This document shows positions 5,201 through 61,619 of a DNA stretch of 64,000 nucleotides, piece by piece; position 1 is the stretch's first letter; every line of letters starts with the position of its first letter. The DNA is taken from NCBI GenBank assembly GCA_028826165.1, contig JAPDFW010000134.1:1-64000 (forward strand). The letters run 5' to 3'. This stretch comes from Anaeramoeba ignava BMAN. Lineage: Eukaryota > Protista > Anaeramoebae. A model generated the notes under the pieces. It was not told where the DNA came from. It did no database searches and saw nothing but the letters and a program-made list of their open reading frames with translations. Position numbers and translations under genes: made by a program.

Positions 5201-6756
5201 CAAATCAAATTCAAATTAAATCAAATCAAATCAAATTAAATTAAATCAAATCAAATTAAATTCAAATTAAATCAAATCAAATCAAATTAAATTAAATCAA
5301 ATCAAATCAATATCAAATCAAATTAAATTAAATTAAATTAAATTAAATCAAATTAAATTCAAATTAAATCAAATTAAATTAAATCAAATCAAATCAATAT
5401 CAATTCAAATTAAATCAAATCAAATTAAATCAAATTAAATTAAATCAAATTAAATTAAATCAAATTAAATCAAATTAAATCAAATTAAATCAAATTAAAT
5501 ATTAAATTAAATCAAATCAATATCAAATCAAATTAAATTAAATTAAATCAAATTAAATCAAATTAAATTAAATCAAATTAAATTAAATCAAATTAAATTA
5601 AATCAAATCAATATTAAATCAAATTAAAATTAAATCAAATCAAATCAAATCAATATTACATTAAATTAAATTAAATCAAATCAAATCAAATTAAATCAAT
5701 ATCAAATTATATTAAATCAAATTAAATCAAATTATATTAAATATTAAATTAAATCAAATATTAAATTAAATCAAATCAATATCAAATTAAATCAAATTAA
5801 ATAAAATTAAATCAATATCAAATCAAATTATATTAAATCAAATTAAATCAAATTAAATCAAATTAAATCAAATCAAATCAAATCAAATTAAATTAAATCA
5901 AATCAAATTAAATTAAATCAAATCAATATCAAATCAAATTAAATTAAATTAAATCAAATATTAAATTAAATCAAATCAATATCAAATCAAATCAAATTAA
6001 ATTAAATTAAATCAAATTAAATCAAATTAAATTAAATCAAATTAAATTAAATCAAATTAAATCAAATATTAAATTAAATATTAAATTAAATCAAATCAAA
6101 TCAATATTACATTAAATTAAATTAAATCAAATCAAATTAAATCAATATTAAATAATAAATATTAAATTAAATCAATATTAAATCAATATTAAAATAAATA
6201 TTAAATCAAATATTAAATTAAATATTACTTCAATAACTTCAGGAGCAGCATAATGAGGTGAACCACAAGATGTTTCAAGTAAATGTCTTTCATTAATTAA
6301 TCCAGCCATTCCAAAATCAGCAATTTTAATATTACCAAAAGAATCAAGAAGAAGATTTTCAGGTTTTAAATCTCTATGACAAACAAGATGATTATGACAA
6401 TATTCTAAAGCATAAATCAATTGTTGAAAAATAATCAAAGATTGAGCTGATGAAATAAATTCTTGATTGCCGAGATAATCAAATAATTCGCCACCAGGCA
6501 TATATTCCATAACAATAAATAAATAATCATCTGACTCAAAAACATCAAATACTTTTAATACACTTGGATGATTTAATAACTTCAAAACTGCAATTTCTTT
6601 TTGTGCATTTATTCTTGCTTTTTCTGTTTCAAAAATTAATTGTTTTGGCATTATTTTGATTGCTACTTGTTTTTCTGTTTCTGTATTAATTGCTAATTTT
6701 ACTTTTCCTGTTGTTCCAGTTCCTAAAGTTTTAAGTAATTTATAAGGTCCAATCAT
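2263..6756 (-). CDS. BRSK/Gin4-like kinase, copy 2 (kinase, UBA-like segment, K/Q/E-rich linker, KA1-like C-terminus)
   Basis: Exons 6756-6229, 4082-2833 and 2762-2263; introns 6228-4083 and 2832-2763 are GT-AG and restore the frame. One apparent frameshift near 3330 in the low-complexity linker. The KA1 call is inference from family architecture. Confidence 0.88.
4083..6228 (-). repeat. 2146-nt intron filled with AAATC/AAATT pentamer satellite
   Basis: Plus strand is a continuous mix of aaatc/aaatt units between canonical splice sites. Confidence 0.9.
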
Positions 6757-20252: not shown

Positions 20253-23200
20253 TTAAATGTAATCAATCATTGATTTGGAATTTAATTGATAAAAATCTTT
20301 TAAATTTTGAATCTCTTTTCGATTAATTTCTTTTGTTTCATCAAATTTATCATGATAAAGAAAATAAATTAATTGATGAATTGTTTCAAATGATTTTCTT
20401 GAATAATCATGAACTTGATTACTTGAATCTGAAACATTCAAAAACATTCCTTTAAATAATTCACTTCTTAATAATAATATTAATTTATGAACTTTAATTT
20501 CTTTTTCTTCAACAATTATTGTAAAATCTTTTGTTGATTCCTGTTGATATAATTTATGGAAATCTTTCAATATTCCTTTTCTTCCTTTTTTTGAATCAAA
20601 TTCTTCTAAAAATTCTTGGAAAAATTCTCTTGTTTTCTTTTCATTTTCTTCAATTTCTTTGAGTATTAACTTTGGTTCTTGACTGTCTCTCCAAAAATAA
20701 TAAATGGGATTTTTTTCATTTTGTTTTGATTGATGTGTAAATATATCAATAATTTTGGAGAAATCAAAAAAACCAGTATAAAGGAAATTTAAGGCAAGTT
20801 TAACAATTTCTTTTGGTTTTTGCGAACAAATATTGATAAATTTTTGTAAAAGAGAATCATTGTTATTAAATCGTGTTAATAAAATCAATTTATGAACTTT
20901 AAATTTTGCAAAATCATTTGATTGAATTGATAAATCTGAAAAATTATCATTTGAATTCAATAAAATATCCAAATCTTGATTAAAAGAATAAACCCTCAAA
21001 AATGAATCAACAAACTCTTTTTTGATTTCTCTTTCTTGTAAATCATAAATATCAACATCATTCTTGAGAAAAAACTGAATATTTTGTGTTTTATTATGCA
21101 TGATTGAAATTGAAAGAGGAGTTTCATTTTCTTTAGTTTTTGAATTAATATCAGCTCCTTTTGAAATCAAATATTCAATAATTTCAATTGACACATTTTG
21201 ACGACAAGTTAAATGCAAAGCATTTTCATTTCTTCGAGTTTTTGCATGAATATCAGCTCCTTTTTCAACTAAATATTCAATTATATTAAGTGGAAACTGT
21301 CTTTCACAAGCAGAATGAAAAATTGTGTAATGAGAAGAAGTTTTGACATTAATATCTATTCCTTTTTCAACTAAATATTTGATTATTTCAAATGATGGAA
21401 TATTTTGACAAAGAAAATGTAAAGCTGTTTCGTTTTCATTTGTTTTTGCATTAATATCAACCCCTTTTTCAACAAGAAATTTGATAATTTCAAATGAGGG
21501 TTTGAGATTTAAACAAGCAAAATGCAAAGCTGTTTGATTACCACTTTTGGCTTTAATATCAGCTCCTTTTTCAACCAAAAGTTGGATAACTTCATATGAT
21601 CGATATTTTTTACAAGCAAAATGCAAAGCTGTTTCATTTTGATTTGTTTTAACATTAATATTGATTCCTTTTTCGATTAAATATTTAACAACTTCAATAG
21701 ATACTTCATTTTGAAAAGCAAAATGTAAAGCTGTTTGGTTTTGATCTGTTTTTGCATTAATATCAGCTCCTTTTTCAATTAAATATTTAACAACTTCAAT
21801 AGATACTTCATTTTGAAAAGCAAAATGTAAAGCTGTTTGACTTTGATCTGTTTTTGCATTAATATCAGCTCCTTTTTCAACCAAAAACTTGATAAGTTTA
21901 AATGATGGATTATTTTGGCAAAGAAAATGTAAAGCTGTTTCGTTTTCACTTGTTTTTGCATTAATATCAACCCCTTTTTCAATTAAATAATCAATTAATT
22001 GAGGAGATGCGGAATACTGGCAAATAAGATGTAAAACTGTTTCGTTTTGGTCTGTTTTTGCATTAATATCAACTCCTTTTTCAACAAAATACTTAATGAT
22101 TTCAAGTGGTGTGCCATTTTGACAAGCAAGATGTAAAACAGTTTGATTTTGATAACTTGTTTTGGCATTTATATCAATTCCTTTTTCAACTAAAAATTTG
22201 ATCATTTCAAAAGAACGGTTATATTCTACAGCAATATGCAAGGCTGTGTTATTTAGGTTTGTTTTGGAATTAATATCTACTCCTTTTTCAATCAGATATT
22301 CAATAATTGGAAGAGATAAATTAGATCGACAAGCAAAATGCAAAAGTGTTTCATTTTGATCTGTTTTCTCATTAATATCTACTCCTTTGGAAACTAAATA
22401 CTCGATGATTTCAATAGAAATGTTTGGATTTTGGAAAAGAGAATGCAAAATTGAATCACCAAAAGTTGCTTTTGCATTTATATCAGCTCCATTTTCAACT
22501 AAATATTGAATAATTTCCAAAGATGAACTAAATTCACAAGCAATATGCAAAGCTGTTATATTTAAATGTGTTGTTGCATTGATATTGATTCCGTTTGCAA
22601 CAAATAAGTTGAGGATTTTAATTGGAGGATTGTATTGACAAATATGATGTAAAGAATTAGAACCATTTATTGTTTTTGCATTGATATCAATTCCTTTGGA
22701 GATCAAGTATTCAATAATTTCATATTTTGGGTTTGATTCACAAGCAAAATATAAAGCGTTTTGTCCATAGTTTGTTTTTGCATTAATATCAATTCCTTTT
22801 GAAACTAAATATTCAATAACTTCAAGGGATGAATTACCTTGGCAAGCAAAATGTAAAGCTGAAAAATTTTCTTGTGTTTTGGCGTTAATATCAATTCCTT
22901 TTGAAACTAAATATTCAATAACTTCTATTGAAATGTTTGAAGATAAACAAGCAAAATGTAAAGGTGTTTTATAATTATATGACTTTTCATTAACATCTAT
23001 TCCCTTTTCAACTAAGCAATCAAGAACTTCAAGAGGAATATTAGAATTTATGCAAGCAGAATGTAAAACAGATTCATTTTGATTTGTTTTTGCATGAACA
23101 TCTATTCCTTTTTCTATTAAATATTCAATAATTTCTATTGAAATATTTGGATTTTTGCAAGCAAAATGTAAAACAGATTCATCTTGATTTGTTTTTGCGT

Positions 23201-24086
23201 TAATATCAATTCCTTTTGAAACTAAATATTTAATAATTTCTATTGAAATATTTGGATTTTTGCAAGCAAAATGTAAAACAGATTCATTTTGATTTGTTTT
23301 TGCATTAATATCAATTCCTTTTGAAACTAAATATTTAATAATTTCTATTGAAATATTTGGATTCTTGCAAGCAAAATGTAAAACAGATTCATTTTGATTT
23401 GTTTTTGCATTAATATCAATTCCTTTTGGAACTAAATATTTAATAATTTCTATTGAAATATTTGGATTCTTGCAAGCAAAATGTAAAACAGATTCATCTT
23501 GATTTGTTTTGGCATTAATATCAATTCCTTTTGAAACTAAATATTTAATAATTTCTATTGAAATATTTGGATTCTTGCAAGCAAAATGTAAAACAGATTC
23601 ATCTTGATTTGTTTTTGCATTAATATCAATTCCTTTTGAAACTAAATATTCAATAATTTCTATTGAAATATTTGGGTTTTTGCAAGCAAAATGTAAAACA
23701 GATTCATCTTGATTTGTTTTGGCATTAATATCAATTCCTTTTGAAACTAAATATTTAATAACTTCTATTGAAATATTTGGATTCTTGCAAGCAAAATGTA
23801 AAACAGATTCATCTTGATTTGTTTTGGCATTAATATCAATTCCTTTTGAAACTAAATATTTAATAATTTCTATTGAGCTATTTTGACAAGCAAAATGAAA
23901 AGGTGTTTTTCCTTTTATATCTTTTGAATTAATATCTATTCCTTTTTCTATTAAATATTTAATAATTTCTATTGAAACTTTTTTTATAATTGCGAAGTTA
24001 AGGATATTATCTTCTTCTTTTAAATTTGTTTCAAATGTTTTTAATTTTTCAATTTGATTTTTTTCAATAATCTCAAATATATTCAT
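20253..24086 (-). CDS. Ankyrin-repeat protein with C-terminal tandem BTB/POZ domains
   Basis: Intact 1277-aa ORF with about 28 ankyrin repeats (T.LHFAC...YLV.KG.DINAK), then FSDLSI...FKVHKLILLTR and KDFTIIVEEKEIKVHKLILLLRSELFKGMF. Confidence 0.92.
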   Translation of the reverse strand: MNIFEIIEKNQIEKLKTFETNLKEEDNILNFAIIKKVSIEIIKYLIEKGIDINSKDIKGKTPFHFACQNSSIEIIKYLVSKGIDINAKTNQDESVLHFACKNPNISIEVIKYLVSKGIDINAKTNQDESVLHFACKNPNISIEIIEYLVSKGIDINAKTNQDESVLHFACKNPNISIEIIKYLVSKGIDINAKTNQDESVLHFACKNPNISIEIIKYLVPKGIDINAKTNQNESVLHFACKNPNISIEIIKYLVSKGIDINAKTNQNESVLHFACKNPNISIEIIKYLVSKGIDINAKTNQDESVLHFACKNPNISIEIIEYLIEKGIDVHAKTNQNESVLHSACINSNIPLEVLDCLVEKGIDVNEKSYNYKTPLHFACLSSNISIEVIEYLVSKGIDINAKTQENFSALHFACQGNSSLEVIEYLVSKGIDINAKTNYGQNALYFACESNPKYEIIEYLISKGIDINAKTINGSNSLHHICQYNPPIKILNLFVANGININATTHLNITALHIACEFSSSLEIIQYLVENGADINAKATFGDSILHSLFQNPNISIEIIEYLVSKGVDINEKTDQNETLLHFACRSNLSLPIIEYLIEKGVDINSKTNLNNTALHIAVEYNRSFEMIKFLVEKGIDINAKTSYQNQTVLHLACQNGTPLEIIKYFVEKGVDINAKTDQNETVLHLICQYSASPQLIDYLIEKGVDINAKTSENETALHFLCQNNPSFKLIKFLVEKGADINAKTDQSQTALHFAFQNEVSIEVVKYLIEKGADINAKTDQNQTALHFAFQNEVSIEVVKYLIEKGININVKTNQNETALHFACKKYRSYEVIQLLVEKGADIKAKSGNQTALHFACLNLKPSFEIIKFLVEKGVDINAKTNENETALHFLCQNIPSFEIIKYLVEKGIDINVKTSSHYTIFHSACERQFPLNIIEYLVEKGADIHAKTRRNENALHLTCRQNVSIEIIEYLISKGADINSKTKENETPLSISIMHNKTQNIQFFLKNDVDIYDLQEREIKKEFVDSFLRVYSFNQDLDILLNSNDNFSDLSIQSNDFAKFKVHKLILLTRFNNNDSLLQKFINICSQKPKEIVKLALNFLYTGFFDFSKIIDIFTHQSKQNEKNPIYYFWRDSQEPKLILKEIEENEKKTREFFQEFLEEFDSKKGRKGILKDFHKLYQQESTKDFTIIVEEKEIKVHKLILLLRSELFKGMFLNVSDSSNQVHDYSRKSFETIHQLIYFLYHDKFDETKEINRKEIQNLKDFYQLNSKSMIDYI
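23056..23880 (-). repeat. 105-nt (35-aa) near-identical tandem ankyrin units
   Basis: gcaaaatgtaaaacagattc recurs with a 105-nt period (e.g. 23161, 23371, 23581, 23791); seven near-identical units plus a diverged one. Confidence 0.9.
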
Positions 24087-24152
24087 TTGTAGAAAAAAAA
24101 TGAAAAAAATGAAAAATGGAAAATTATTTTTTTCATTTTTTACTTTTCAAAA
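24087..24152. promoter_or_regulatory. 66-bp bidirectional promoter with TCATTTT initiator-like motifs on both strands
   Basis: Divergent ATGs at 24086 (-) and 24153 (+); aaaatga motifs facing left and ttcattttt facing right. Confidence 0.55.
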
Positions 24153-25934
24153 ATGAATGAAATTATATTTTTTGGTTCAAATCAAAATCCAATTCTTTTC
24201 AAAAATAAACCAATTAAAATATTAAAACCAATTCAATTTAAATTTGAAAATGAAAATGAAAATGAAAATGAAAAACAAATTAAACAAATTTCATCAGGAA
24301 GATTTTCAACAATTTTCCTTTTTAAAAATGGAAAAGCAATAGAATATTTAGATGAAAATGATTCAAATCAAAATCCTAAAAAAATCCAAATTGAAAATAT
24401 TCAAAAAGTATCTGTTGGTGATCATAACGAAGCTATTTTAACAAAAGAAGGAAATGTATTTGCAAAAGGAAAATATATTAATCCAAAAAATCCAAATGAA
24501 TTTATCAATATTTCATCATTAATTGAAGATACAAATGATAGAATAATTGAAGATATTGTTTCTGGACATAGATCAATTTACTTATTAACTTCAAATCAAA
24601 ATGTTTATGGAATTGGTTCAAATGAATTTGGTCAACTTGGTTTTGATTCTGAAACACTGAAAAAAACAGAAAAACCAATTTTAATGATGAAAAATGTTTC
24701 TAAAATATTTTCAGGAAATTTTTCAGAATTTGTTTTTCTTTTAAATTCAAATCAAGAATTATTTGGATGTGGTGATAATTACTTTTACCAACTTGGTCTA
24801 AAAAGAACGAGAAATAACAAAATATTAAGTAAATTAACCAAAATCAAAAATATTCCAAAAGGTAAAATAATTGATATTCAAAGTGGATATCATCATTCAA
24901 TAATGTTGATTGAAGATGAACAAAAGAAAAAATCCAAAAATCCAAAAAGAAAACTTTATTCATGTGGAACCATTTTATTGCGACTAGAAGGAAAAATGAA
25001 ATTTATCAAAAAATTTACTCAAATCAAATCATCTTTATTTGAAAATGATGATGATAATATTCTTGATTTTTCTTGTGGAAATGATCATACTTTGATTTTA
25101 ACTTCCAAATCAAAATTAATTTCATTTGGAAATAATGAATATGGTCAATTAGGAACTGAAGATACAAAAGAGCAATCAATTCCAATTCAAATTGAACTTC
25201 CTAAATTAAGATTTAATGAAAATATTTCCAATTATCATGCTTCTTGTGGATATTCCAATTCATTTCTTTATTATTCTCCTCCTTCTTTTTCCAATCTTGA
25301 AGAAGATTTGATAAAATTATTTAGAAGAAAAGAATTTTGTGATATTTCATTTAAAACAGAAAATGGAGAAATAATCAAAGCTCATAAATTAATATTGAAA
25401 TATAGATTAAATCAAAATCAAAATCAAATTGAAAAACTTCAAGAAATTATTTCAAAAAAATCAATTAAAGAATCAAATCAAATATTTGAAATAATTTATT
25501 CAAACAGAATAATAAATCCAAAATTATATTCTGAAATTAAAGAAATTATAAATTTAAATGAAAAAATTGAAGAAACAATGAAAAGAATTTATTTAAATGA
25601 AAATGAAAATGAAAATGAAAAAGATTTTATAATTGAAAGAAAAGAAAAACAATATAAATTTCCAAAATTAATATTAATAATGAGAAGTGAATTATATCGA
25701 GGAATGTTTTTATCTGTAATAAATGATAAATCTAATAAAGTTACAGATTATAGTGAATTAAGTAATAAATCATTTCAAATATTTGAATATTGGATTTATT
25801 CAAATCAAATTAAAGATGAAATTCAAATTACACAAGAAATAATTAATGAAATTAAAATTGGAATTGATTATTTTCAATTAAATCAAACAAATCCAAATTT
25901 AATTGATTTATTAATTAAGAAATTTCAAAATTAA
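24153..25934 (+). CDS. RCC1/BLIP-II propeller + tandem BTB protein, copy A
   Basis: Intact 593 aa; RCC1 motifs (GSNEFGQLG, SCGNDHTLIL, FGNNEYGQLG); BTB motifs FCDISF...AHKLIL and KDFII...RSELYRGMF. Confidence 0.92.
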   Translation: MNEIIFFGSNQNPILFKNKPIKILKPIQFKFENENENENEKQIKQISSGRFSTIFLFKNGKAIEYLDENDSNQNPKKIQIENIQKVSVGDHNEAILTKEGNVFAKGKYINPKNPNEFINISSLIEDTNDRIIEDIVSGHRSIYLLTSNQNVYGIGSNEFGQLGFDSETLKKTEKPILMMKNVSKIFSGNFSEFVFLLNSNQELFGCGDNYFYQLGLKRTRNNKILSKLTKIKNIPKGKIIDIQSGYHHSIMLIEDEQKKKSKNPKRKLYSCGTILLRLEGKMKFIKKFTQIKSSLFENDDDNILDFSCGNDHTLILTSKSKLISFGNNEYGQLGTEDTKEQSIPIQIELPKLRFNENISNYHASCGYSNSFLYYSPPSFSNLEEDLIKLFRRKEFCDISFKTENGEIIKAHKLILKYRLNQNQNQIEKLQEIISKKSIKESNQIFEIIYSNRIINPKLYSEIKEIINLNEKIEETMKRIYLNENENENEKDFIIERKEKQYKFPKLILIMRSELYRGMFLSVINDKSNKVTDYSELSNKSFQIFEYWIYSNQIKDEIQITQEIINEIKIGIDYFQLNQTNPNLIDLLIKKFQN

Positions 25935-26075
25935 AATTAAAATTAAAATTAAAATTAAAATTAAAATTAAAATTAAAATTAAAATTAAAATTAAAATTAA
26001 AATTAAAATTAAAATTAAAATTAAAATTAAAATTAAAATTAAAATTAAAATTAAAATCAAAATTAAAATTAAAAT
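25935..26075 (+). repeat. TAAAAT hexamer array starting at the stop codon of copy A
   Basis: CAA AAT TAA AAT TAA AAT ... continues for about 140 nt. Confidence 0.9.
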
Positions 26076-26113
26076 TCCAAAATTATTTTTTTTCATTTTT
26101 TTTCTTTTTAAAA

Positions 26114-28018
26114 ATGAATGAAATTTTATTTTTTGGTTCAAATGATTCAACTCTTATCAAAAATAAACCAAATAAAATATTAAAACCAATTCAATTTAAA
26201 TTTGAAAATGAAAATGGAAATGAAAATGAAAATGAAAATGAAAATGAAAAACAAATTAAACAAATTTCATCAGGAAGATTTTCAACAATTTTCCTTTTTA
26301 AAAATGGAAAAGCAATAGAATATTTAGATGAAAATGATTCAAAACAAAATCCTAAAAAAATCCAAATTGAAGAAAATATTCAAAAAGTAACTGTTGGCTA
26401 TGAAAATGAAGCTATTTTAACAATAGAAGGAAATGTATTTGCCAAAGGAAAATATATTAATTCAAAAAATCCAAATGAATTTATCAATATTTCATCATTA
26501 ATTGAAGATATAAATGATAGAATAATTCAAGATATTGTTTCTGGATTCAATTCAATTTATTTATTAACTTCAAATCAAAATGTTTATGGAATTGGTTCAA
26601 ATAAATATGGTCAACTTGGTTTTGATTGTGAAACACTTGAAACAACAGAAAAACCAATTTTAATGATGAAAAATGTTTCTAAAATATTTTCAGGAAATTC
26701 TTCAAATCATGTTTTTCTTTTAAATTCAAATCAAGAATTATTTGGATGTGGATTAAATAGATTTGGTCAACTTGGATTAGGAGAATCAAGAAAAGAAGAA
26801 ACAAAAATCCATAAATTAACCAAAATCCAAAATATTCCAAAAGGCAAAATAATTGATATTAAATGTGGAAATGGTCATTCAATAATGTTGATTGAAAATG
26901 AAAATGAAAATGAAAATGAAAATGAAAATGAAAATGAAAATGAAAATGAAAATGAAAATGAAAATGAAAATGAAAATGAAAATGAAAATTCAAAAAGAAA
27001 ACTTTATTCATGTGGATTTTGGCAATATAATGGGCTTGACGAAGATGAAGATGAAGATGAAGATGAAAATGAAAATAAAGATGAAGATGGAAATACTTAT
27101 AAATTTACTGAAATTAAATCATCTTTATTTGAAAATGATGATGATATTCTTGATTTTTCTTGTGGATATAATCATACTTTGATTTTAACTTCCAATGGGA
27201 AATTAATAGTATTTGGAAATAATTTATTTGGTCAATTAGGAACTGGAGATACAAAAAATCAATTAATTCCAATTCAAATTGAACTTCCTAAATTAAGATT
27301 TAATGAATATATTTCTAATTATCATGTTTCCTGTGGATATTTCAAATCATTTCTTTATTATTCTCCTCCTTCTTTTTCCAATCTTGAAGAAGATTTGATA
27401 AAATTATTTAGAAGAAAAGAATTTTGTGATATTTCATTTAAAACCAAAAATGGAGAAATAATTGAAGCTCATAAATTAATATTGAAATATAGATTAAATC
27501 AAAATCAAAATCAAATTGAAAAACTTCAAGAAATTATTTCAAATAAATCAATTAAAGAATCAAATCAAATATTTGAAATGATTTATTCAAACAATTCCAA
27601 AATAAATCCAAAATTATATTATGAAATTAAAGAAATTATAAATTTAAATGAAAAAATTGAAGAAACAATGAAAAGAATTTATTTAAATGAAAATGAAAAA
27701 GATTTTACAATTGAAAGAAAAGAAAAACAATATAAATTCCCAAAATTAATATTAATAATGAGAAGTGAATTATATCGAGGAATGTTTTTATCTGTAATAA
27801 ATGATAAATCTAATAAAGTTACAGATTATAGTGAATTAAGTAATAAATCATTCCAAATATTTGAATATTGGATTTATTCAAATCAAATTAAAGAAGGAAT
27901 TAAAATTACACAAGAAATAATTAATGAAATTAAAATTGGAATTGATTATTTTCAATTAAATGAAACAAATCCAAATTTATTTGATTTATTAATTAGGAAA
28001 TTTAATAATCAAAATTAA
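26114..28018 (+). CDS. RCC1 + tandem BTB protein, copy B (long poly-EN insert)
   Basis: Intact 634 aa, colinear with copy A; (GAAAAT)n tract at about 26894-26989. Confidence 0.92.
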   Translation: MNEILFFGSNDSTLIKNKPNKILKPIQFKFENENGNENENENENEKQIKQISSGRFSTIFLFKNGKAIEYLDENDSKQNPKKIQIEENIQKVTVGYENEAILTIEGNVFAKGKYINSKNPNEFINISSLIEDINDRIIQDIVSGFNSIYLLTSNQNVYGIGSNKYGQLGFDCETLETTEKPILMMKNVSKIFSGNSSNHVFLLNSNQELFGCGLNRFGQLGLGESRKEETKIHKLTKIQNIPKGKIIDIKCGNGHSIMLIENENENENENENENENENENENENENENENENSKRKLYSCGFWQYNGLDEDEDEDEDENENKDEDGNTYKFTEIKSSLFENDDDILDFSCGYNHTLILTSNGKLIVFGNNLFGQLGTGDTKNQLIPIQIELPKLRFNEYISNYHVSCGYFKSFLYYSPPSFSNLEEDLIKLFRRKEFCDISFKTKNGEIIEAHKLILKYRLNQNQNQIEKLQEIISNKSIKESNQIFEMIYSNNSKINPKLYYEIKEIINLNEKIEETMKRIYLNENEKDFTIERKEKQYKFPKLILIMRSELYRGMFLSVINDKSNKVTDYSELSNKSFQIFEYWIYSNQIKEGIKITQEIINEIKIGIDYFQLNETNPNLFDLLIRKFNNQN

Positions 28019-28304
28019 AATCAAAATTAAAATCAAAATTAAAATTAAAATTAAAATCAAAATTAAAATTAAAATTAAAATTAATATTCAAAATTAAAAT
28101 TAAAAATTAAAAATTAAAATTAAAATCAAAATTAAAATTAAAATTTAAAATCAAAATTAAAATTAAAATTAAAATCAAAATTAAAATTAAAATTTAAAAT
28201 CAAAATTAAAATTAAAATTAAAATTTCCTTTTAATTTTTTGGAAAGAAAAAGAAAAAATGGAAAACAATTTTTGGATTTTAAATTTAAATTTGATTTTAA
28301 ATTT

Positions 28305-29675
28305 TCATTTTAACAAATCATTCAAAAGTTCAACTTCTCGATTCAATTTTTCATCACCAATGATTTTAATTTCCTTTTCCAAATAATCAATAAATTTTTT
28401 TACCTTTTCTTTTCCTTCATCATTTCGTTGGAAATTATTAACAATATCAACAAATCTGACTAACAAAATAGCTTTTCGAATACTCAAATCTTGGAAGAAT
28501 TCAGATTGATCGTTTTGGAGTTCAGGAAAGGCAATATTGATGACTTCTTGATATTCTTTTCCAAGTTTGTCTTTGAAACTGATGGTGATATTCAAGGGAA
28601 GACCATCACCAACAGATTTATCCATTTTGAGTAATAAAACACCACCTTGAACCTCATTATTCTCATTGACATTACTTGGCATAACTGTGGAAATATTAGC
28701 GATTGTTGTTTCCTTCTCGGATTCCGCATCGGGTGATCCATATACAGAAAGAATTTTCGCACCATCCACCTTGATTGTTGCATCAAAACATATTGGAGTC
28801 ATAACATAATCAAAATCAGTATCCATTCTTCTTTTGAATTCAGAAGATGAATTAACTGAGTAATAATTTGCTCCCTTTGTTTTTGTGATGATATCAATCA
28901 ATTCAACATTGAAATCAACTCCAATCCCGATAAAGGTTGTAAAAATAGCCTTTTCGGAAGCCTTTCTTGCCAAAGTGAATAAACCTTCACTTCTTGTTTC
29001 ACCAGTTGTTGGTTGAGCATCAGTTAAGAAAATGATCCTATTTTCGCGTTCCAAATCTTCCTTCTCTTGACTTTTCAAATATTTCTCAATCATTCGTGAT
29101 CCTTCAATAAACCCCTCTGCCATATTTGTTCCTCCTCTTGTTTTCAACTTGTTGATTTTATCATTCATTTTTTCCTTGTCAATTTTCCCGAAATTTTGGA
29201 ACGCGATCAATTCTTCTGCATCATCATCAAAAATTACAACTCCAAAATTATCCTCATCATTCAAATGTCCAACAAGACCAAGAAGCGATCTCTTCGCAAT
29301 TTCAAGTTTACTTGAATGTGATTCAACATTATGATATTCGCCTGTAAATGAACAGCTCATTGATCCAGAAATATCAAGAACAATCACACAATTCAACTTG
29401 GGTCGTCCTATTTCTTGAATTCCTTCTCCATCATATTTCGATTTTGTTGCTAATGATAGAAAATATTCCTTTTCGTTCGTCTCTAAATTGTTCACAATTC
29501 CACAAAAAGGTTCTGCTGTGAAAATTTTTTGCTTTTCAATTTTGCCTGCGTTGAAATAATATTCAAAAAATAATCCATGATAAGTCATTTTTGGAATAGA
29601 AGGAGTTCTTCTTGAACGGATTTTTAATCTAGTATTTGTTGTATCTTTTGCTCCATGAAAAGCACAACTTGACAT
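28305..29675 (-). CDS. von Willebrand factor A (vWA) domain protein, YfbK/archaeal-type
   Basis: Intronless 456 aa; MIDAS motifs VLDISGSM, TRGGTNM and IIFLTDAQP; N-terminal GAKD...TYHGLFFEYYF segment. Confidence 0.85.
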   Translation of the reverse strand: MSSCAFHGAKDTTNTRLKIRSRRTPSIPKMTYHGLFFEYYFNAGKIEKQKIFTAEPFCGIVNNLETNEKEYFLSLATKSKYDGEGIQEIGRPKLNCVIVLDISGSMSCSFTGEYHNVESHSSKLEIAKRSLLGLVGHLNDEDNFGVVIFDDDAEELIAFQNFGKIDKEKMNDKINKLKTRGGTNMAEGFIEGSRMIEKYLKSQEKEDLERENRIIFLTDAQPTTGETRSEGLFTLARKASEKAIFTTFIGIGVDFNVELIDIITKTKGANYYSVNSSSEFKRRMDTDFDYVMTPICFDATIKVDGAKILSVYGSPDAESEKETTIANISTVMPSNVNENNEVQGGVLLLKMDKSVGDGLPLNITISFKDKLGKEYQEVINIAFPELQNDQSEFFQDLSIRKAILLVRFVDIVNNFQRNDEGKEKVKKFIDYLEKEIKIIGDEKLNREVELLNDLLK

Positions 29676-29914
29676 TTTTTATTATAATAATAATAAAAAG
29701 AAAATAAAAATGAAAAGTGAAAAATGTTTTTAATTTTTTTTAAATATTTTTGGAAAGTTCCAACTTTAAGGATTAATAAGAAAAAAATAATTAAAGTAAT
29801 CAAAATAAAAAATATTTGCGAAAAATACTTTACTTTTCCTCTTTTCTTTTATTTTATATTTTTAACAAATTCAAAAATTCATTTTTTCATTTTTCATTTT
29901 TTTTCTTTTAAAAA

Positions 29915-31701
29915 ATGAATGATTGTTTATTTTTTGGTTTAAATCAAAATCCAAAACTTTTCAAAAATGAACCAAATAAAATAACAAAACTACCAATTCA
30001 ATTTAAATTTGAAAATGAAAATGAAAATGAAAATGAAAAACAAATTAAACAAATTTCAACAGGTTGTTTTTCAACAATTTTCCTTTTTGAAAATGGAAAA
30101 GCAATAGAATATTTAAGATATCCAAATTCAAATGAAAATCCTGAAAAAATTCAAATTGAAGAAAATATTCAAAAAGTATCTGTTGGTCATGAAAACGAAG
30201 CTATTTTAACAATAGAAGGAAATGTATTTGCCAAAGGAGATGATATTAATCCAAATAATCCAAAAGAATTTATCAATATTTCATCATTAATTGAAGATAC
30301 AAATGATAGAATAATTCAAGATATTGCTTCTGGATGGGATTCAATTTACTTATTAACTTCAAATCAAAATGCTTATGGAATTGGTTCAAATAAATATGGC
30401 CAACTTAGTGTTGATTCTAAAACACTTCCAAAAACAGAAAAACCAATTTTAATGATGAAAAATGTTTCTAAAATATTTTCAGGAAGTACTTCTTATTATA
30501 TTTTTCTTTTAAATTCAAATCAAGAATTATTTGGATGTGGATCTAATCATTGGGGACAACTTGGATTAGGAGAATCAAGAAAAGAAGCAGAAATCCAAAA
30601 ATTAACCAAAATCCAAAATATTCCAAAAGGCAAAAGTAATTGATCTTAAATGTGGAGAATGCCATTCAATAATGTTGATTGAAAATGAAAATGAAAATCC
30701 AAAAAGAAAACTTTATTCATGTGGAGATTCTAAACAAAATGGACTTAATAAAAATGAAGATACAAGAGAATTTACTGAAATTAAATCATATTTATTTGAA
30801 AATGATGATAATATTCTTGATTTTTCTGTTGGATATCATCATACTTTTATTTTAACAAAAAAAGGGAAATTAATAGGATTTGGATACAATTATTATAGTC
30901 AATTAGGAACTGGAGATATAAAGTGGAATCAATCAATTCCAATTCAAATTGAACTTCCTAAATTAAGATTTAATGAAGATATTTCCAATTATCATGTTTA
31001 TTGTGGATATGAAAATTCATTTCTTTATTATTCTTCTTCTTTTTCTAATCTTGAAGAAGATTTGATAAAATTATTTAGAAGAAAAGAATTTTGTGATATT
31101 TCATTTAAAACAGAAAATGGAGAAATAATTGAAGCTCATAAATTAATATTGAAATATAGATTAAATCAAAATCAAAATCAAAATAAAAATGAAATTGAAA
31201 AACTTAAAGAAATTATTTCAAATAAATCAATTAAAGAATCAAATCAAATATTTGAAATGATTTATTCAAATAGAATAATAAATCCAAAATTATATTCTGA
31301 AATTAAAGAAATTATAAATTCAAATGAAAAAATAGAAGAAACAATGAAAAGAATTTATTTAAATGAAAATGAAAATGAAAATGAAAAAGATTTTATTAAT
31401 TGAAAGAAAAGAAAAACAATATAAATTTCCTAAATTAATATTAATAATGAGAAGTGAATTATATCGAGGAATGTTTTTATCTGTAACTGATGATAAATCA
31501 AATAAAGTTACAGATTATAGTGAATTAAGTAATAAATCATTTCAAATATTAGAATATTGGATTTATTCAAATCAAATTAAAGAAGAAATTGAAATTACAC
31601 AAGAAATAATTGATGAAATTCAAAGAGGAATTGATTATTTTCAATTAAATGAAACAAATCCAAATTTATTTGATTTATTAATTAATAAATTTAATAATTA
31701 A
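29915..31701 (+). CDS. RCC1 + tandem BTB protein, copy C (two apparent 1-nt insertions)
   Basis: ORF pieces 29915-30643, 30672-31403 and 31363-31701 are colinear with copy A; extra base at about 30636 and about 31397. Assembly error or recent pseudogene. Confidence 0.8.
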
Positions 31702-31910
31702 AATTAAAATTAAAATTTAAATTAAAATTAAAATTAAAATCAAAATTAAAATTAAAATTAAAATTAAAATTAAAATTAAAATTAAAATTAAAATTAAAAT
31801 CAAAATCAAAATTAAAATTAAAATTAAAATTAAAATTAAAATTAAAATTAAAAAATCAAATTTTTTAAAATTAAAATAAAAATTAAAATTAAAAATCATT
31901 TTTCATTTCA

Positions 31911-33683
31911 ATGAATATCCATTTTTTTATCAAAAATGAACCAGATAAAATAACAAAACCAATGAAAATTTGAAAATGAAAATGAAAATGAAAATGAAAA
32001 TGAAAAACAAATTAAACAAATTTCATCAGGAAATTGTTCAACAATTTTCCTTTTTGAAAATGGAAAAGCAATAGAATATTTAGAATATTCAAAACAAAAT
32101 CCTGAAAAATCCAAATTGAAAATATTCAAAAAGTAACTGTTGGTAATAATAATGAAGCTATTTTAACAAAAGAAGGAAATGTATTTGCAAAAGGAAAAGA
32201 TATTTATCCAAGAAATCCAAATGAATTTATCAATATTTCATCATTAATTGAAGATACAAATGATAGAATAATTAAAGATGTTGTTTCTGGAAGATATTCA
32301 ATTTACTTATTAACTTCAAATCAAAATGCTTATGGAATTGGTGACAATTATTATGGTCAAATTGGTTTTGATTCTGAAACACTTGAAAGAACAGAAAAAC
32401 CAATTTTAATGATGAAAAATATTTCTAAAATATTTTCAGGAAATTCTTCAGATCATGTTTTTCTTTTAAATTCAAATCAAGAATTATTTGGATGTGGTGA
32501 TAATATTTCTAGTCAACTTGGATTAGGAAAATCAAGAAAAGAACAAAGAATCCAAAAATTAACCAAAATCCAAAAAATTCCAAAAGGCAAAATAATTGAT
32601 ATTCAATGTGGATATTCTCATTCAATAATGTTGATTGAAGATGAAAATCAAAATCAAAATCAAAATCAAAATCCAAAAAGAAAACTTTATTCATGTGGAT
32701 ATTATGAATATAATGGACTTGGCCGAAATGAATATACTTATGAATTTACTGAATTCAAATCATCTTTATTTGAAAATGATGATAATATTCTTGATTTTTC
32801 TGTTGGAAAAGAGCATACTTTGATTTTAACTTCCAATTCAAAATTGATAGTATTTGGAGATAATGAATATGGTCAATTAGGAACTGGAAATACAAAAAAT
32901 CAATCAATTCCAATTCAAATTGAACTTCCTAAATTAAGATTTAATGAAAATATTTCTAATTATCATGTTTCTTGTGGAATGATTAAATCATTTCTTTATT
33001 CTTCTCATCCTTCTTTTTCCAATCTTGAAGAAGATTTGATAAAACTATTTAGAAGAAAAGAATTTTTGCAATATTTCATTTAAAACCGAAAATGGAGAAA
33101 TAATTGAAGCTCATAAATTAATATTGAAATATAGATTAAATCAAAATCAAAATCAAAATCAAAATCAAATTGAAAAACTTAAAGAAATTATTTCAAAAAA
33201 ATCAATTAAAGAATCAAATCAAATATTTGAAATGATTTATTCAAACAGAATTATAAATCCAAAATTATATTCTGAAATTAAAGAAATTATAAATTTAAAT
33301 GAAAAAATTGAAGAAACAATGAAAAGAATTTATTTAAATGAAAAAGAAAATGAAAATGAAAAAGATTTTATTATTGAAAGAAAAGAAAAGAAATATAAAT
33401 TTCCTAAATTAATATTAATAATGAGAAGTGAATTATATCGAGGAATGTTTTTATCTGTAACTGAAGATAAATCTAAATAAAGTTACAGATTATAGTGAAT
33501 TAAGTAATAAATCATTTCAAATATTTGAATATTGGATTTATTCAAATCAAATTAAAAGATGAAATTCAAATTACACAAGAAATAATTGATGAAATTAAAA
33601 TTGGAATTGATTATTTTCAATTAAATCAAACAAATCCAAATTTATTTGATTTATTAACTAATAAATTTAATAACCAAAATTAA
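31911..33683 (+). CDS. RCC1 + tandem BTB protein, copy D (several apparent indels; possible pseudogene)
   Basis: ATG at 31911 with shortened N-terminus; colinear with paralogs to TAA 33681-33683; frameshifts near 31968, 32108, 33066, 33477 and 33557. Confidence 0.7.
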
Positions 33684-34250
33684 AATTAAAATTAAATCAA
33701 TATCAAAATTAAAATTAAAATTAAAATTAAAATTAAAATTAATATTAAAATCAAAATTAAATTAAAATTAAAATTAAAATTAAAATTAAAATTAAAATTA
33801 AAATTAAAATTAAAATAAAATTCAAAATTAAAATTAAAGTAAAAATTAAAATTAAAAGTTTTGGATTTTATCTTTTTTTCTGTGTTTTAACAAAATCCAA
33901 AACTTTTTATTGTTTATTCCAATAAAAAAAAATTTTTTTTTTTGTTAAAAATAATAAAAAAACAAAAAAGAAATTGAATAAAAGGGGAGTTTCAAAACAG
34001 TAACAAAAAAAACCAAAAAAAGAAAGAAAAAGATCAAAAAAAAATAAACCTTATTGAAATTCAATTAAAACTTTTCAATCTCAGAAAACGATAACGATCA
34101 TTTTAATTTAAATCCATTTTAATTTAAATCTATTTTAATTTAAATCTATTTTAATTTAATCCAAAAACAAAAAAAAAAGCAAAAAAAAAGAAGAAGCAAA
34201 ACAAAAAAAATTTTTTATTTCCATTTTCATTTTTAATTTAATTTTTAAAA

Positions 34251-36036
34251 ATGAATGAAATTTTATTTTTTGGTCAAAATCAAAATCCAAAACTTTTCAA
34301 AAATGAACCAAATAAAATAACAAAACCAATTCAATTTAAATTTGAAAATGAAAATGAAAATGAAAATGAAAAACAAATTAAACAAATTTCATCAGGAATA
34401 TGTTCAATAATTTTCCTTTTTAAAAATGGAGAAAGCAATAGAATATTCAAAACAAAATCCTGAAAAAATCCAAATTGAAGAAAATATTCAAAAAGTATCT
34501 GTTGGTCATAAAAATGAAGCTATTTTAACAAAAGAAGGAAATGTATTTGCCAAAGGAAGTGACATTAATTCAAAAAATCCAAAAGAATTTATCAATATTT
34601 CATCATTAATTGAAGATACAAATGATAGAATAATTCAAGATATTGTTTCTGGACATAGATCAATTTACTTATTAACTTCAAATCATAATGTTTATGGAAT
34701 TGGTTCAAATCAATTTGGTCAAGTTGGTTTTGATTCTAAAACACTTCAAAAAACAGAAAAACCAATTTTAATGATGAAAAATGTTTCTAAAATATTTTCA
34801 GGAAATTTTTCATATTCTGTTTTTCTTTTAAATTCAAATCAAGAATTATTTGGATGTGGTGATAATGAAGATAAACAAATTGCTGCAAAAGAAGAAAAAA
34901 AAATCCAAAAATTAACCAAAATCCAAAATATTCCAAAAGGCAAAATAATTGATATTAAATGTGGAAGTGCTTATTCAATAATGTTGATTGAAAATCAAAA
35001 TGAAAATGAAAATCCAAAAAGAAAACTTTATTCATGTGGGCATTATCAATATAATGGACTTGGAAAAAATGAAAATACTTATGAATTTACTGAAATCAAA
35101 TCATCTTTATTTGAAAATGATGATAATATTCTTGATTTTTCTGTTGGATATAATCATACTTTGATTTTAACTTCCAATTCAAAATTAATTGGATTTGGAA
35201 GTAATTATTATAGTCAATTAGGAACTGGAGATACAAAAAATCAATTAATTCCTATTCAAATTGAACTTCCTAAATTAAGATTTGATGAAGATATTTCTAA
35301 TTATCATCTTTCTTGTGGTGATTACAATTCATTTCTTTATTCTTCTCCTTCTTTTTCCAATCTTGAAGAAGATTTGATAAAACTATTTAGAAGAAAAGAA
35401 TTTTGTAATATTTCATTTAAAACCAAAAATGGAGAAATAATTGAAGCTCATAAATTAATATTGAAATATAGATTAAATCAAAATCAAAATCAAAATCAAA
35501 ATCAAATTGAAAAACTTAAAGAAATTATTTCAAAAAAATCAATTAAAGAATCAAATCAAATATTTGAAATGATTTATTCAAACAGAATTATAAATCCAAA
35601 ATTATATTCTGAAATTAAAGAAATTATAAATTCAAATGAAAAAATTGAAGAAACAATAAAAAGAATTTATTTAAATGAAAATGAAAATGAAAATGAAAAT
35701 GAAAATGAAAATGAAAAAGATTTTATTATTGAAAGAAAAGAAAAGAAATATAAATTTCCTAAATTAATATTAATAATGAGAAGTGAATTATATCGAGGAA
35801 TGTTTTTATCTGTAACTGAAGATAAATCTAATAAAGTTACAGATTATAGTGAATTAAGTAATAAATCATTTCAAATATTAGAATATTGGATTTATTCAAA
35901 TCAAATTAAAAATGAAATTGAAATTACACAAGAAATAATTGATGAAATTCAAATAGGAATTGATTATTTTCAATTAAATGAAACAAATCCAAATTTATTT
36001 GATTTATTAATTAACAAATTTAATATTCAAAATTAA
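34251..36036 (+). CDS. RCC1 + tandem BTB protein, copy E (one apparent 1-nt insertion)
   Basis: 34251-34463 and 34426-36036 overlap; aatggagaaagca versus paralog aatggaaaagca. Confidence 0.85.
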
Positions 36037-36114: not shown

Positions 36115-37092
36115 ATGGATCGACTTTCTTTTTCAGAACAATGCTTTATTATTCAAGGAATCAAAGATAACATACGAAACGATGCAAGAACAAGACTTGA
36201 TTATAGATATTTTTCAATTGAAACCGGAATACTTCCACAAACAAACGGATCATCAAGATTAAGACTTGCTGGAACAGAAATTGTAGTTGGAATCAAAACG
36301 GAAATAGGCGAGCCATTAAAAGAGTCTCCAAATGATGGGCGAATAGAGGTTTCTGTTGAATGGTAAATGATACAAAAAGAGAAAAAAAAAATATCAAAAA
36401 AAAATTTATAATAAAAAAAATTTCGAAAAAAATTTTTTTCTTTTTACTTATTTTTCTGTGATCAAAAAAGTACGTTTTCAACCAGTGAAAGAAGGTCTAA
36501 GGAAGTTCTAAATCAAGAAATAACGGCAATGATGCAAAAAATATATTCAGGAGGAAAAGCTATTGATTTAACAAATTTGAGTATTTTAAAAGAAAAAAAA
36601 TGTTGGATTTTATATATTGATGTTTTAGTTTTAAGATCAGATGGGAATCTTTTTGACGGCGTTTCACTAGCAATCAAAGCCGCATTATTTAACACAAGAA
36701 TTCCCAAAGTCCAGGTTGTTCCTGGCGAGCGTTCTGGCGAGATAGAAATTGAGGTTTTTGATGAACAACAAAGTGAAAAAATTAATATAAAAAATGTCCC
36801 TATTTGTGTCACTATTTCTCAAGTTTCTGGATTTGTTGTAATTGACACTACTGTTTATGAAGAGCTTTGTATTGATTCAAGTTTAGTTGTTGCTATTGAT
36901 TCTTCTTCTAATTTGTTTGGAATTCGCAAATATGGAAATGATGGAATTGAATCAAGTTCTTTAATTGAAATTATTAATTTAGCTTCAAAAGCTGGTCAAA
37001 ATTTACATGCTCGTTTGGACTCTCTTCTTCAATTCGAAGAGAAAAATAGAATTCAAAATTCTCTTGATTTGGATTTTATTCATCAAAAATAA
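36115..37092 (+). CDS. RRP42: Exosome complex RNase PH-like subunit RRP42 (EXOSC7)
   Basis: LSFSEQCFIIQGIKDNIRNDARTRLDYR, TNGSSRLRL, CWILYIDVLVL..DGNLFD, AALFNTRIP; intron 36363-36470 is GT-AG and restores VE|C in frame. Confidence 0.88.

Positions 37093-61588: not shown

Positions 61589-61619
<31 letters not shown>

Follow-up and report, generated by a model that had tools for sequence, protein, structure and literature searches.

Tandem RCC1-BTB Genes of Anaeramoeba ignava With Hypervariable Loops on One Predicted Propeller Face, a Candidate Binder Repertoire

Results

Organization of the Locus

The window analyzed here is a stretch of 64,000 nucleotides from Anaeramoeba ignava BMAN (contig JAPDFW010000134.1). 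It carries five tandem RCC1-BTB gene copies, named A to E, and the following features.

20253..24086, minus strand: neighboring gene in divergent transcription, with a homologous BTB-BTB tail joined to about 28 ankyrin repeats
24113..24152, plus strand: T-rich conserved 5' element (TTTTCATTTTTT..CTTTTCAAAA), abutting the ATG and common to most paralogs
24153..25934, plus strand: copy A, intact ORF of 593 aa (propeller, aa 1-374; BTB-BTB tail, aa 375-593)
24177..25256, plus strand: hypervariable span of copy A, 39 codons in 19 patches (entropy of at least 2 bits, 69 paralogs)
25293..25595, plus strand: BTB-1 of copy A, aa 381-481, degenerate, without the A2 helix and the B3 strand
25614..25931, plus strand: BTB-2 of copy A, aa 488-593, complete BTB core
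26114..28018, plus strand: copy B, intact ORF of 634 aa
27998..28225, no strand: (AAAATT)n microsatellite, 3' of the stop codon of copy B
28305-29675, minus strand: VWA gene, which splits the array between B and C
29915..31701, plus strand: copy C, full length, in three frames as assembled, with breaks near 30636 and 31400
31911..33683, plus strand: copy D, decayed, with an N-terminal deletion that takes the first strand and loop, and four to five one-base indels
34251..36036, plus strand: copy E, full length, with its frame broken once, by a G inserted near 34437

A first, sequence-only reading of this locus had described five paralogs with near-identical strands and BTB domains. All five are present, but only A and B are intact ORFs, C, D and E being frame-broken as assembled. 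Copy B is longer than copy A because Asn-Glu runs encoded by (GAAAAT)n sit in two of its loops. Introns were rejected as an explanation for the shifts of frame in copies C, D and E: neighboring HSPs lie end to end or overlap, and one-base indels are visible in the DNA alignment. At 30636, C-specific short-read unitigs (runs X1 and X2, with C's own loop sequence) have one base fewer than copy C as assembled, and this break is therefore probably an assembly error; the break in copy E was left undecided by the short reads.

The 5' element was defined by aligning the upstream regions of 69 copies. The (AAAATT)n satellite also lies 3' of copies A, C (31686-31894) and D, and of most paralogs outside the array. 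A mobile element was considered as carrier of the copies and rejected, since flank similarity comprises only neighboring paralogs, a 5' element of about 35 nt and the satellite. A shallow look at the flanks showed no transposon features. The BTB-BTB tail of the ankyrin neighbor shares 32% identity with that of copy A.

Domain Architecture and Predicted Fold

Both A and B give Pfam matches to RCC1 repeats and, in two stretches, to BTB, with 98-103 bits for PF00415 (RCC1; cut-off 21.7) and 80-89 bits for PF13540 (RCC1_2). The AF2 model of copy A (pLDDT 87.9, pTM 0.83) displays seven b, seven c and seven d strands, strand 4-9 being d7, so that the propeller is modeled as seven four-stranded blades with the N-terminal strand closing blade 7. 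The top Foldseek matches were RCC1, the HERC2 RLD, RPGR and UVR8, with TMt of 0.76-0.81 against the RCC1 and HERC2 RLDs; among proteins of solved structure, UVR8 is also the one that matches best in sequence. The conserved GTPase-contact and catalytic residues of an RCC1-type GEF were not found on the binding face. Variability within the family peaks at the G-x-x-H/S loop positions (3.0-3.6 bits), which makes one conserved GTPase partner unlikely.

In the tail, BTB-1 was delimited from the Pfam BTB stretch 388-466 and the AF2 secondary structure, and BTB-2 resembles the BTB of KBTBD4 (E = 0.004). The AF2 model of the tail (pLDDT 89.7) is best matched in structure by 4u2m and 4u2n, single-chain constructs of two tethered BTBs that form a dimer, and in this model the two BTBs of the tail make up a pseudo-dimer within one molecule. 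Taken singly, its domains match SPOP-Cul3 4eoz_A (TMt 0.73), KBTBD4, KBTBD2-CRL3, Keap1 and BCL6 in Foldseek; the canonical dimerizing BTB/POZ fold was thus recognized twice by Pfam and again by Foldseek. The 3-box/BACK helices are absent from the AF2 model, in which the protein stops right behind helix A5 of BTB-2. The phi-x-E position, aligned to L-K-E of KBTBD4, is polymorphic: A and B carry I-N-D, most paralogs T-E-D or T-N-D. Judging from single unspliced ORF pieces, the A. ignava genome encodes a Cul3-like cullin: the largest piece at G000:C58 has Cullin-3 (4e-119) and then Cullin-4 (2e-101) as best PDB matches. On these models, a role of the tail as Cullin-3 adaptor is plausible.

Size and Distribution of the Family

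A 29-nt motif of BTB-2 occurs 1,259 times in the 42.8 Mb A. ignava genome, and its reversed control does not occur. By this sequence count, the array of the window consists of five tandem members of an intronless, species-specific A. ignava family of about 1,260 genes, whose copies form tandem arrays and are also scattered over most contigs. The scored loci (n = 74) showed 81-85% identity, and 72 of them were open. In the protein database, 732 entries matched at E <= 0.001; the best 120 of these 732 are all named A. ignava, as are the ten full-length relatives that were looked up. The database search found no relative of the same architecture above 35% identity outside A. ignava, and we found no mention of the family in the published Anaeramoeba literature searched. 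With respect to RNA evidence for the subfamily, no run recorded as RNA contains the window stretch. Transcriptome-derived database entries are divergent subfamily members only, and the short database fragments of the family are genome-annotation pieces from broken copies, not transcripts.

Hypervariable Positions

The sequence-only reading had claimed a constant scaffold with hypervariable loops, and every loop string that it quoted can be read from the window sequence. The alignment of 69 intact paralogs, which match copy A best and hence form a non-random sample, bears this out, as 413 of its 587 columns lie below 0.5 bit and 39 reach at least 2 bits. The list of variable sites given in that reading was real but covered about half of the 19 patches. 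In copy A, the hypervariable residues are:

9, 11, 12, 21, 22, 50, 67, 90, 91, 107, 139, 140, 158, 159
170, 190, 192, 193, 208, 210, 223, 224, 226, 246, 247, 273
275, 276, 282, 310, 311, 327, 329, 330, 339, 340, 342, 367, 368

The patches include the G-x-N-x-x-GQLG loops, the residues immediately ahead of every innermost strand, as well as the N-terminal strand closing blade 7. Chance or misalignment was rejected as the source of variability, the hypervariable columns having less than 20% gaps and being flanked by invariant residues. When entropy was placed on the AF2 propeller topology, as that reading had proposed, all 39 columns fell in the propeller and none among the 219 residues of the tail (Fisher p = 1e-8). 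All 39 sites lie within b-c or d-a loops or at strand ends touching those loops, and none on the opposite face. Hypervariable residues make up 13 of 24 in the b-c loops and 19 of 86 in the d-a loops, that is 32/110, against 0/90 in the a-b and c-d loops (p = 8e-10). The anticipated restriction of variable sites to a single face was thus recovered: on the basis of strand topology and UVR8 homology rather than measured coordinates, the hypervariable sites are predicted to be confined to one ('top') face of the propeller.

The UVR8 interface is formed by residues of the GWRHT motif and W94 (PMC4501546), and the hypervariable positions coincide with these residues; residues 310/311 of copy A, for example, align with W233/R234, W285/R286 and W337/R338. 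The richness in Y/H/W/R/D remarked on earlier also held, as Tyr (5.3x), Trp (36x), His (3.5x), Arg (2.7x) and Asp (2.3x) are all enriched in hypervariable over scaffold positions, a composition that resembles that of a paratope.

Selection on the Loop Codons

A dN/dS above 1 had been anticipated for the variable sites, and this is what was observed. The hypervariable pN was 0.49 (Jukes-Cantor 0.80) vs. a scaffold pS of 0.086, and dN/dS was about 2.4 within the hypervariable codons alone. Ascertainment bias was controlled by a split-sample design, in which half of the sequences served to define the sites and the other half to test them; with 17 independent pairs, hypervariable pN was 0.496 vs. 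a scaffold pS of 0.079. Moreover, piN exceeded scaffold piS more than fourfold in 43 columns. At scaffold sites (entropy <0.5 bit), pN/pS was about 0.14, showing that the proteins are under constraint. Tree-based site models were set aside because recombination invalidates a single tree. The loop codons have been pushed nearly to saturation by diversifying selection.

Within the hypervariable codons, variation was 0.55, 0.49 and 0.31 at the first, second and third positions, respectively. Synonymous divergence was itself raised, at 0.27-0.29 inside hypervariable codons vs. 0.08 in the scaffold. Synonymous diversity was 0.25 in the Gly codons adjoining hypervariable codons vs. 0.078 elsewhere, and along the scaffold it was highest beside hypervariable codons (0.12), dropping to 0.035 farther off. 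A local mutational process could be an alternative source of this raised synonymous diversity.

Exchange Between Copies

Scaffold distances between pairs fall in a narrow range (0.049-0.071), the scaffolds being about 94% identical. Linkage is short: r2 amounts to 0.15 for sites up to 10 nt apart and to about 1/N at greater spacing, and for synonymous sites near 50/50 frequency it is about 0.017, with four gametes in 77% of site pairs. The distances calculated on 5' and 3' halves have a correlation of 0.04, and a Sawyer-type run statistic was greater than in 40 of 40 permutations (z ~6.5). Close pairs are mosaics and loop patches are mutually independent. An excess of loop alleles shared among the five local copies was rejected, as 16 of 190 patch pairs were identical vs. 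16.4 expected from family-wide allele frequencies. The almost complete linkage equilibrium of the scaffold, together with the mosaic pairs, points to pervasive gene conversion in short tracts, combined with diversifying selection. These sequence patterns indicate that the family evolves as a pool, whose scaffold is homogenized, and whose loop patches are reassorted independently, by frequent conversion of short tracts and by unequal exchange.

Discussion

Comparison With Known Systems

The HNWD genes of Podospora anserina (HET-D, HET-E) are about 10 NACHT NLR genes with WD40 repeats and death effectors (Paoletti, Saupe and Clave 2007, PMC1805685). Like the A. ignava family, they combine a beta-propeller recognition domain, concerted evolution with exchange, and a few interaction-face residues per repeat under positive diversifying selection. 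HNWD thereby constitutes a germline repertoire for non-self recognition, a role which for the A. ignava family is hypothetical. Exchange in HNWD concerns single repeats, within or between loci, whereas in A. ignava whole genes of 1.8 kb, about 1,260 copies, are pooled. The domains also differ, WD40 and NACHT on one side, an RCC1-like propeller and a constant BTB-BTB tail on the other, and Pfam detected no NACHT or NB-ARC domain in A or B, giving RCC1 and BTB only. By analogy, the A. ignava family would work like HNWD, to which it does not belong.

The MATH-BTB and F-box families of Cullin adaptors in nematodes and plants show adaptive evolution, and their authors proposed that they tag foreign proteins for degradation (Thomas 2006, PMC1524861; summarized in PMC4334554). 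These families and that of A. ignava are alike in being large, lineage-specific birth-and-death families with a selected binding domain. The cullin-binding domain is conserved in the former; in A. ignava the tail is conserved and its cullin binding is putative. The binder is MATH or FTH/FBA in the former and RCC1 in A. ignava. MATH-BTB and F-box families comprise hundreds of genes that have diverged in an ordinary tree-like fashion, in contrast to the A. ignava pool, with its scaffolds about 94% identical and in linkage equilibrium, and MATH-BTB proteins have one BTB dimerizing between chains, where the A. ignava proteins have two in a single chain.

The domain order of the family is that of RCBTB1/2 and IBTK (RCC1 repeats and one to two BTBs), and the A. 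ignava proteins carry the PANTHER-style name 'BTK-binding protein-related'. IBTK and RCBTB1 have been reported as Cul3 partners. Unlike the A. ignava family, RCBTB1/2 and IBTK are single-copy, conserved genes; as regards orthology, the architecture is common and the full-length relatives down to 35% identity are all A. ignava paralogs. UVR8, whose W233, W285, W337, R286, R338 (GWRHT) and W94 sit exactly at the hypervariable positions, is a conserved single gene without BTB, in which the same face serves homodimerization and photoreception. At the DNA level, a constant scaffold with few specificity codons and conversion or unequal exchange is also found in TAL effector RVDs, PRDM9 zinc-finger arrays and lamprey VLR. 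The units of TAL and PRDM9 are short intragenic repeats and VLR are assembled somatically, whereas those of A. ignava are whole dispersed genes.

A Candidate Binder Repertoire and Its Alternatives

Taken together, our data make it fairly probable that the family is a repertoire of propeller binders, diversified by selection in an exchanging pool and feeding a Cullin-3-type ubiquitin ligase. Each copy would be a binder of its own specificity, BTB-2 would pass the bound ligand to the ligase, and the built-in pseudo-dimer would keep about 1,260 near-identical BTBs out of mixed dimers. We hypothesize that the ligands are numerous and fast-changing, such as prey-bacterial, symbiont, viral or mobile-element proteins; an immune receptor function of the family is likewise a hypothesis. 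A more far-reaching version, rather doubtful at present, is that of a combinatorial library of about 1,260 propellers with paratope-like loops, reassorted by gene conversion, for ubiquitin-coupled intracellular recognition of bacterial, viral or mobile-element proteins.

The paralogs might instead each target a protein of the cell itself (e.g., Rab, Rho or Ras GTPases, or trafficking proteins) for turnover or localization, loop diversity then reflecting subfunctionalization. Small GTPases are the classical ligands of RCC1 propellers, on the same face, the Rab and TBC families are greatly expanded according to the Anaeramoeba genome paper, and one database model (P0007) joins a Ras-family domain to the RCC1-BTB architecture. 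Stable pairing with self proteins predicts conserved, co-inherited loop sets and a tree-like structure, whereas here the loop sets of about 1,260 copies are nearly unique, the patches combine freely, dN is near saturation and relatives of the same architecture above 35% identity were found in A. ignava only; we regard such an endogenous function as unlikely. Targeted local mutation, by patch hypermutation or templated micro-conversion, with selection as a mere filter, would account for the synonymous divergence of 0.27-0.29 in hypervariable codons vs. 0.08 in the scaffold and for the value of 0.25 vs. 0.078 in adjoining Gly codons, although diversity-maintaining selection in a recombining pool also predicts such a narrow peak of neutral diversity at linked sites. 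The greater variation at codon positions 1 and 2 (0.55 and 0.49) than at position 3 (0.31) and the strongly non-random residue spectrum indicate selection at the protein level, and an unsystematic look revealed no template repeat or enzyme, so that we hold this explanation to be quite improbable. A diversity-generating retroelement is a poor candidate, given that the diversity lies between germline paralogs, that all three codon positions vary and that a template repeat is not apparent.

The satellite behind the copies, their tandem arrays and spread over most contigs, and the presence of some broken copies would also fit a selfish, satellite-bracketed cassette without function for the organism, whose loops vary for want of constraint. 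Yet a pN of 0.50, six-fold above a pS of 0.08, goes beyond relaxed constraint, and a scaffold pN/pS of about 0.14, the 72 open frames among the 74 top loci and the variable sites on one face only make this very improbable. Hardly credible, finally, is that mosaicism and hypervariability are assembly or polishing artefacts of a high-copy repeat. The frameshift at 30636, if no other, conflicts with the short-read unitigs, and Logan unitigs across the family reach just 60-100 nt; but unitigs from four runs agree to 98% or better with the loops of C, D and E, other differences being unreported, and polishing miscorrection drives sites to the majority allele, not to a 50/50 synonymous equilibrium at a spacing below 30 nt.

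Implications

About 5-6% of the genome of a free-living protist is devoted to one RCC1-BTB family, whose design resembles an engineered binder library, with a fixed scaffold and about 39 randomized, Tyr-rich positions on one face. The family offers an exceptionally clean natural case of concerted evolution vs. diversifying selection, with linkage equilibrium down to about 10 nt, which is of use to population-genetic theory of multigene families. Should the combinatorial library hold, conversion might also occur within clonal lineages, cells of one culture would then differ, and the family would be a protist counterpart of antigen-receptor repertoires, with a scaffold and an effector that are not used in this way elsewhere. 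If the proteins of the candidate binder repertoire are made and coupled to a cullin, it would be among the largest germline recognition repertoires known in unicellular eukaryotes, with RCC1 as a new scaffold and the single-chain BTB pseudo-dimer as a new effector logic, and cell-autonomous immunity and the control of symbionts and prey in Metamonada would become directly testable questions.

Organization of the array

The G+C content of the 64-kb window is about 20%, and the A. ignava BMAN genome is 80.65% A+T (PMC11550330). Five plus-strand copies (A to E) of one RCC1-BTB gene span positions 24153-36036. The sequence-only reading had counted five paralogs at this place; all five copies are present, but only A and B have an intact ORF, whereas C, D and E are frame-broken in the assembly.

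Features of the array and its vicinity
Copy A, plus strand: 593 aa, intact ORF
Copy B, plus strand: 634 aa, intact ORF
Copy C, plus strand: full length, spread across three frames
Copy D, ATG at 31911, plus strand: N-terminal deletion, 4-5 one-base indels
Copy E, plus strand: one G inserted near 34437
20253-24086, minus strand: ankyrin-BTB-BTB gene, 1,277 aa, about 28 ankyrin repeats
28305-29675, minus strand: VWA (von Willebrand factor A) domain gene, 456 aa, between copies B and C
26892-27182 in copy B, and homologous loops in the other four copies: (GAAAAT)n coding microsatellites, giving Asn-Glu runs

Introns were ruled out as the source of the frame changes in C, D and E because the HSPs abut; the changes are therefore indels. 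Short-read unitigs from two runs match copy C, including its own loop sequence, except for one base that they lack and that the assembly carries at position 30636; this break is therefore probably an assembly error. Database fragments of the family such as KAJ5067136.1 are annotation pieces from broken copies, and some of its "pseudogenes" may be long-read consensus errors. Spurious ORFs also arise from the opposite strand of the (GAAAAT)n satellites.

Kilobase-scale AT-only satellites lie at 4100-6223, 9606-11466, 13508-16748 and 61238-63440, with (ATTAA)n, (AATAATT)n, (TAAATA)n and one 12-mer as units and G+C down to 1.7%. The plus-strand gene at 36115-37092, which from its sequence we take to encode an exosome RNase-PH-type subunit, consists of two ORF pieces and is apparently intron-split; the RCC1-BTB family, by contrast, is intronless.

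A very large, species-specific family

A 29-nt motif of the second BTB domain (BTB-2), searched with at most 2 mismatches, gave 1,259 matches in the 42.8 Mb genome and none with the reversed control. The matches are commonly about 2 kb apart, in arrays; at about 1.9 kb per unit, the family makes up roughly 5-6% of the genome. The unit comprises a T-rich 5' element of about 35 nt, the intronless CDS and an (AAAATT)n satellite, and the reading frame is open in 72 of the 74 best-matching loci. A protein search returned 732 matches at E <= 0.001, the best 120 of which, the window's own entry aside, all belong to A. ignava, with 71-83% identity. An exhaustive representative search brought in divergent full-length RCC1-BTB relatives with identity down to 35%; all ten that were looked up are from A. 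ignava, two of them with additional entries derived from transcriptomes. The family is thus very large and species-specific.

A constant predicted fold with one hypervariable face

Pfam detected RCC1 repeats and two BTB stretches. We codon-aligned 69 distinct intact CDSs from the same genome; among 587 well-aligned columns, entropy was below 0.5 bit in 413 and at least 2 bits in 39. These 39 hypervariable columns group as 19 patches, all in the propeller, with none in the 219-residue BTB-BTB tail (aa 375-593 of copy A). Four-residue patches show 53-56 distinct variants in the 69 sequences. Every loop string quoted in the sequence-only reading was recovered in copies A to E, and the variable patches it described are real, but it had listed only about half of the 19. 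The richness in Y, H, W, R and D that it reported holds across the family: Tyr reaches 16.7% of hypervariable positions (5.3-fold enrichment), Trp is enriched 36-fold, His 3.5-fold, Arg 2.7-fold and Asp 2.3-fold, while Ile, Leu, Gly, Pro and Met are depleted.

The AF2 model of copy A, built from a 72-sequence alignment (pLDDT 87.9, pTM 0.83), has RCC1, HERC2 RLDs, RPGR and UVR8 as top Foldseek matches. Its strands form seven blades (a-d), blade 7 being closed by the N-terminal strand 4-9. In a four-stranded antiparallel propeller blade, the b-c and d-a connections share one face, and the hypervariable residues of the loops all fall there (top versus bottom loops, p = 8e-10).

Hypervariable residues by element of the modelled propeller
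b-c loops (top): 13 of 24 residues
d-a loops (top): 19 of 86 residues
Strand ends touching b-c or d-a loops: 7 residues
a-b loops (bottom): 0 of 60 residues
c-d loops (bottom): 0 of 30 residues

Independently, in an alignment with UVR8, the post-Gly pair (N310/D311 in copy A) falls at the GWRHT-motif residues W233/R234, W285/R286 and W337/R338, and the G-x-N-x-x-GQLG patch has its first residue at the W94 position; these UVR8 residues belong to its dimer interface (PMC4501546). Strand topology and alignment agree in placing the variable loops on one side of the propeller, as had been proposed, and the model describes a constant fold with a single hypervariable face. The Asn-Glu runs, which differ greatly in length among A to E and are by far the longest in B, sit in two loops: c5-d5, which belongs to the non-variable face, and d5-a6, inside which they come directly after the SCG patch.

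Selection and exchange among copies

Nei-Gojobori estimates from 600 random pairs of the 69 paralogs gave, for the conserved scaffold, pS 0.086 and, at sites below 0.5 bit, pN 0.012; for the hypervariable codons, they gave pN 0.49 (Jukes-Cantor 0.80) and pS 0.27. As a control against circularity, sites were defined on 34 sequences and tested on 17 disjoint nearest pairs from the other 35: hypervariable pN was 0.496 versus a scaffold pS of 0.079, so that, by this measure, the variable sites do not fall in the range of dN/dS <= 1. In 43 columns piN exceeded scaffold piS more than fourfold. Relaxed constraint was ruled out as the cause of loop variability, since it cannot give pN > pS; the variability therefore requires selection that favours diversity, or else a local mutational process combined with selection. 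Variation in hypervariable codons is greater at positions 1 and 2 than at position 3, where G+C holds at 0.07. These computations show diversifying selection on the loop codons.

Exchange between copies is pervasive. Pairwise scaffold nucleotide distances are bunched (0.049-0.071, 5th-95th percentile), and hardly any tree structure is seen in the family: for informative scaffold sites, r2 drops from 0.15 at spacings up to 10 nt to about 0.015 (1/N) at larger ones. For synonymous polymorphisms of intermediate frequency (36/29, 33/32, 36/33 and others), r2 stands at about 0.017, with all four gametes present in 77% of such site pairs, whatever the distance. The distance correlation is 0.29 between interleaved codons and only 0.04 between 5' and 3' halves; a Sawyer-type run-length statistic lay above 40 of 40 site permutations (z about 6.5), and mosaic structure is visible in the closest tandem pairs. 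Loop patches are statistically independent of one another, and comparisons among the five local copies give 16 identical patches versus 16.4 expected from family-wide allele frequencies.

These observations jointly fit a paralog pool that very frequent short-tract conversion homogenises while loop-codon diversity is actively maintained, and this combination predicts narrow peaks of linked neutral diversity beside the loop codons. Synonymous diversity is 0.12 at one codon from hypervariable codons, 0.06 at two and about 0.035 far off; for Gly codons it is 0.25 adjoining hypervariable codons versus 0.078 elsewhere. Alternatively, a local hypermutation process could possibly raise synonymous diversity at the same places.

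The BTB-BTB tail and its possible partners

Modelled alone, the tail (pLDDT 89.7) best matches 4u2m and 4u2n (TMq 0.56), engineered single chains in which a pair of BTB domains is held together as a dimer, so that the BTBs of each protein appear to pack against each other as a pseudo-dimer within the chain. Among the matches to single domains are Cul3-bound SPOP, KBTBD4, KBTBD2-CRL3, Keap1 and BCL6. In the AF2 models, the core of BTB-2 is complete, and BTB-1 lacks A2 and B3. A 3-box is absent, since the chain ends at helix A5. The BTB-2 loop aligning with the Cul3-contacting phi-x-E (residues 523-526 of copy A, window 25719-25730) is among the few variable spots of the tail, being polymorphic across the family (VIND, VTED or VTND), which puts I-N-D, T-E-D or T-N-D at the phi-x-E position.

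Cullin genes carry introns and were assigned from single ORF pieces; on this basis, the genome has one Cul1/2-like cullin, several Cul4-like ones and one with Cullin-3 as best match. At least four separate Cullin-4-like genes (loci L071, L072, L075 and L076, at places C64, C71, C74 and C109 of the A. ignava genome, G000) were found, and cullins seem expanded.

The ankyrin-BTB-BTB gene and copy A lie on opposite strands, with their starts 66 nt apart. In the ankyrin protein, seven 35-aa repeat units in a row are near-identical, which argues for recent internal amplification. A homologous BTB-BTB tail (32% identity) ends this protein and divergent RCC1 subfamilies, and thus, by sequence, looks like a common effector module behind different binders.

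The RCC1-BTB architecture is widespread. The main text of the Anaeramoeba literature examined mentions neither RCC1 nor BTB, and in a supplement, PANTHER labels of RCC1 type appear only for candidates of lateral transfer. The family shares its logic with the fungal HNWD propeller repertoire (PMC1805685) and with the MATH-BTB and F-box adaptors for which Thomas described adaptive evolution (cited in PMC4334554); new in A. ignava are the scaffold, a pool made up of whole genes, the scale and the pairing of two BTBs in a single chain. We infer that the copies would serve as binders linked to a Cul3-type ligase; that their targets are foreign proteins is a hypothesis. The pseudo-dimer would keep the near-identical BTBs of about 1,260 genes from forming mixed dimers.
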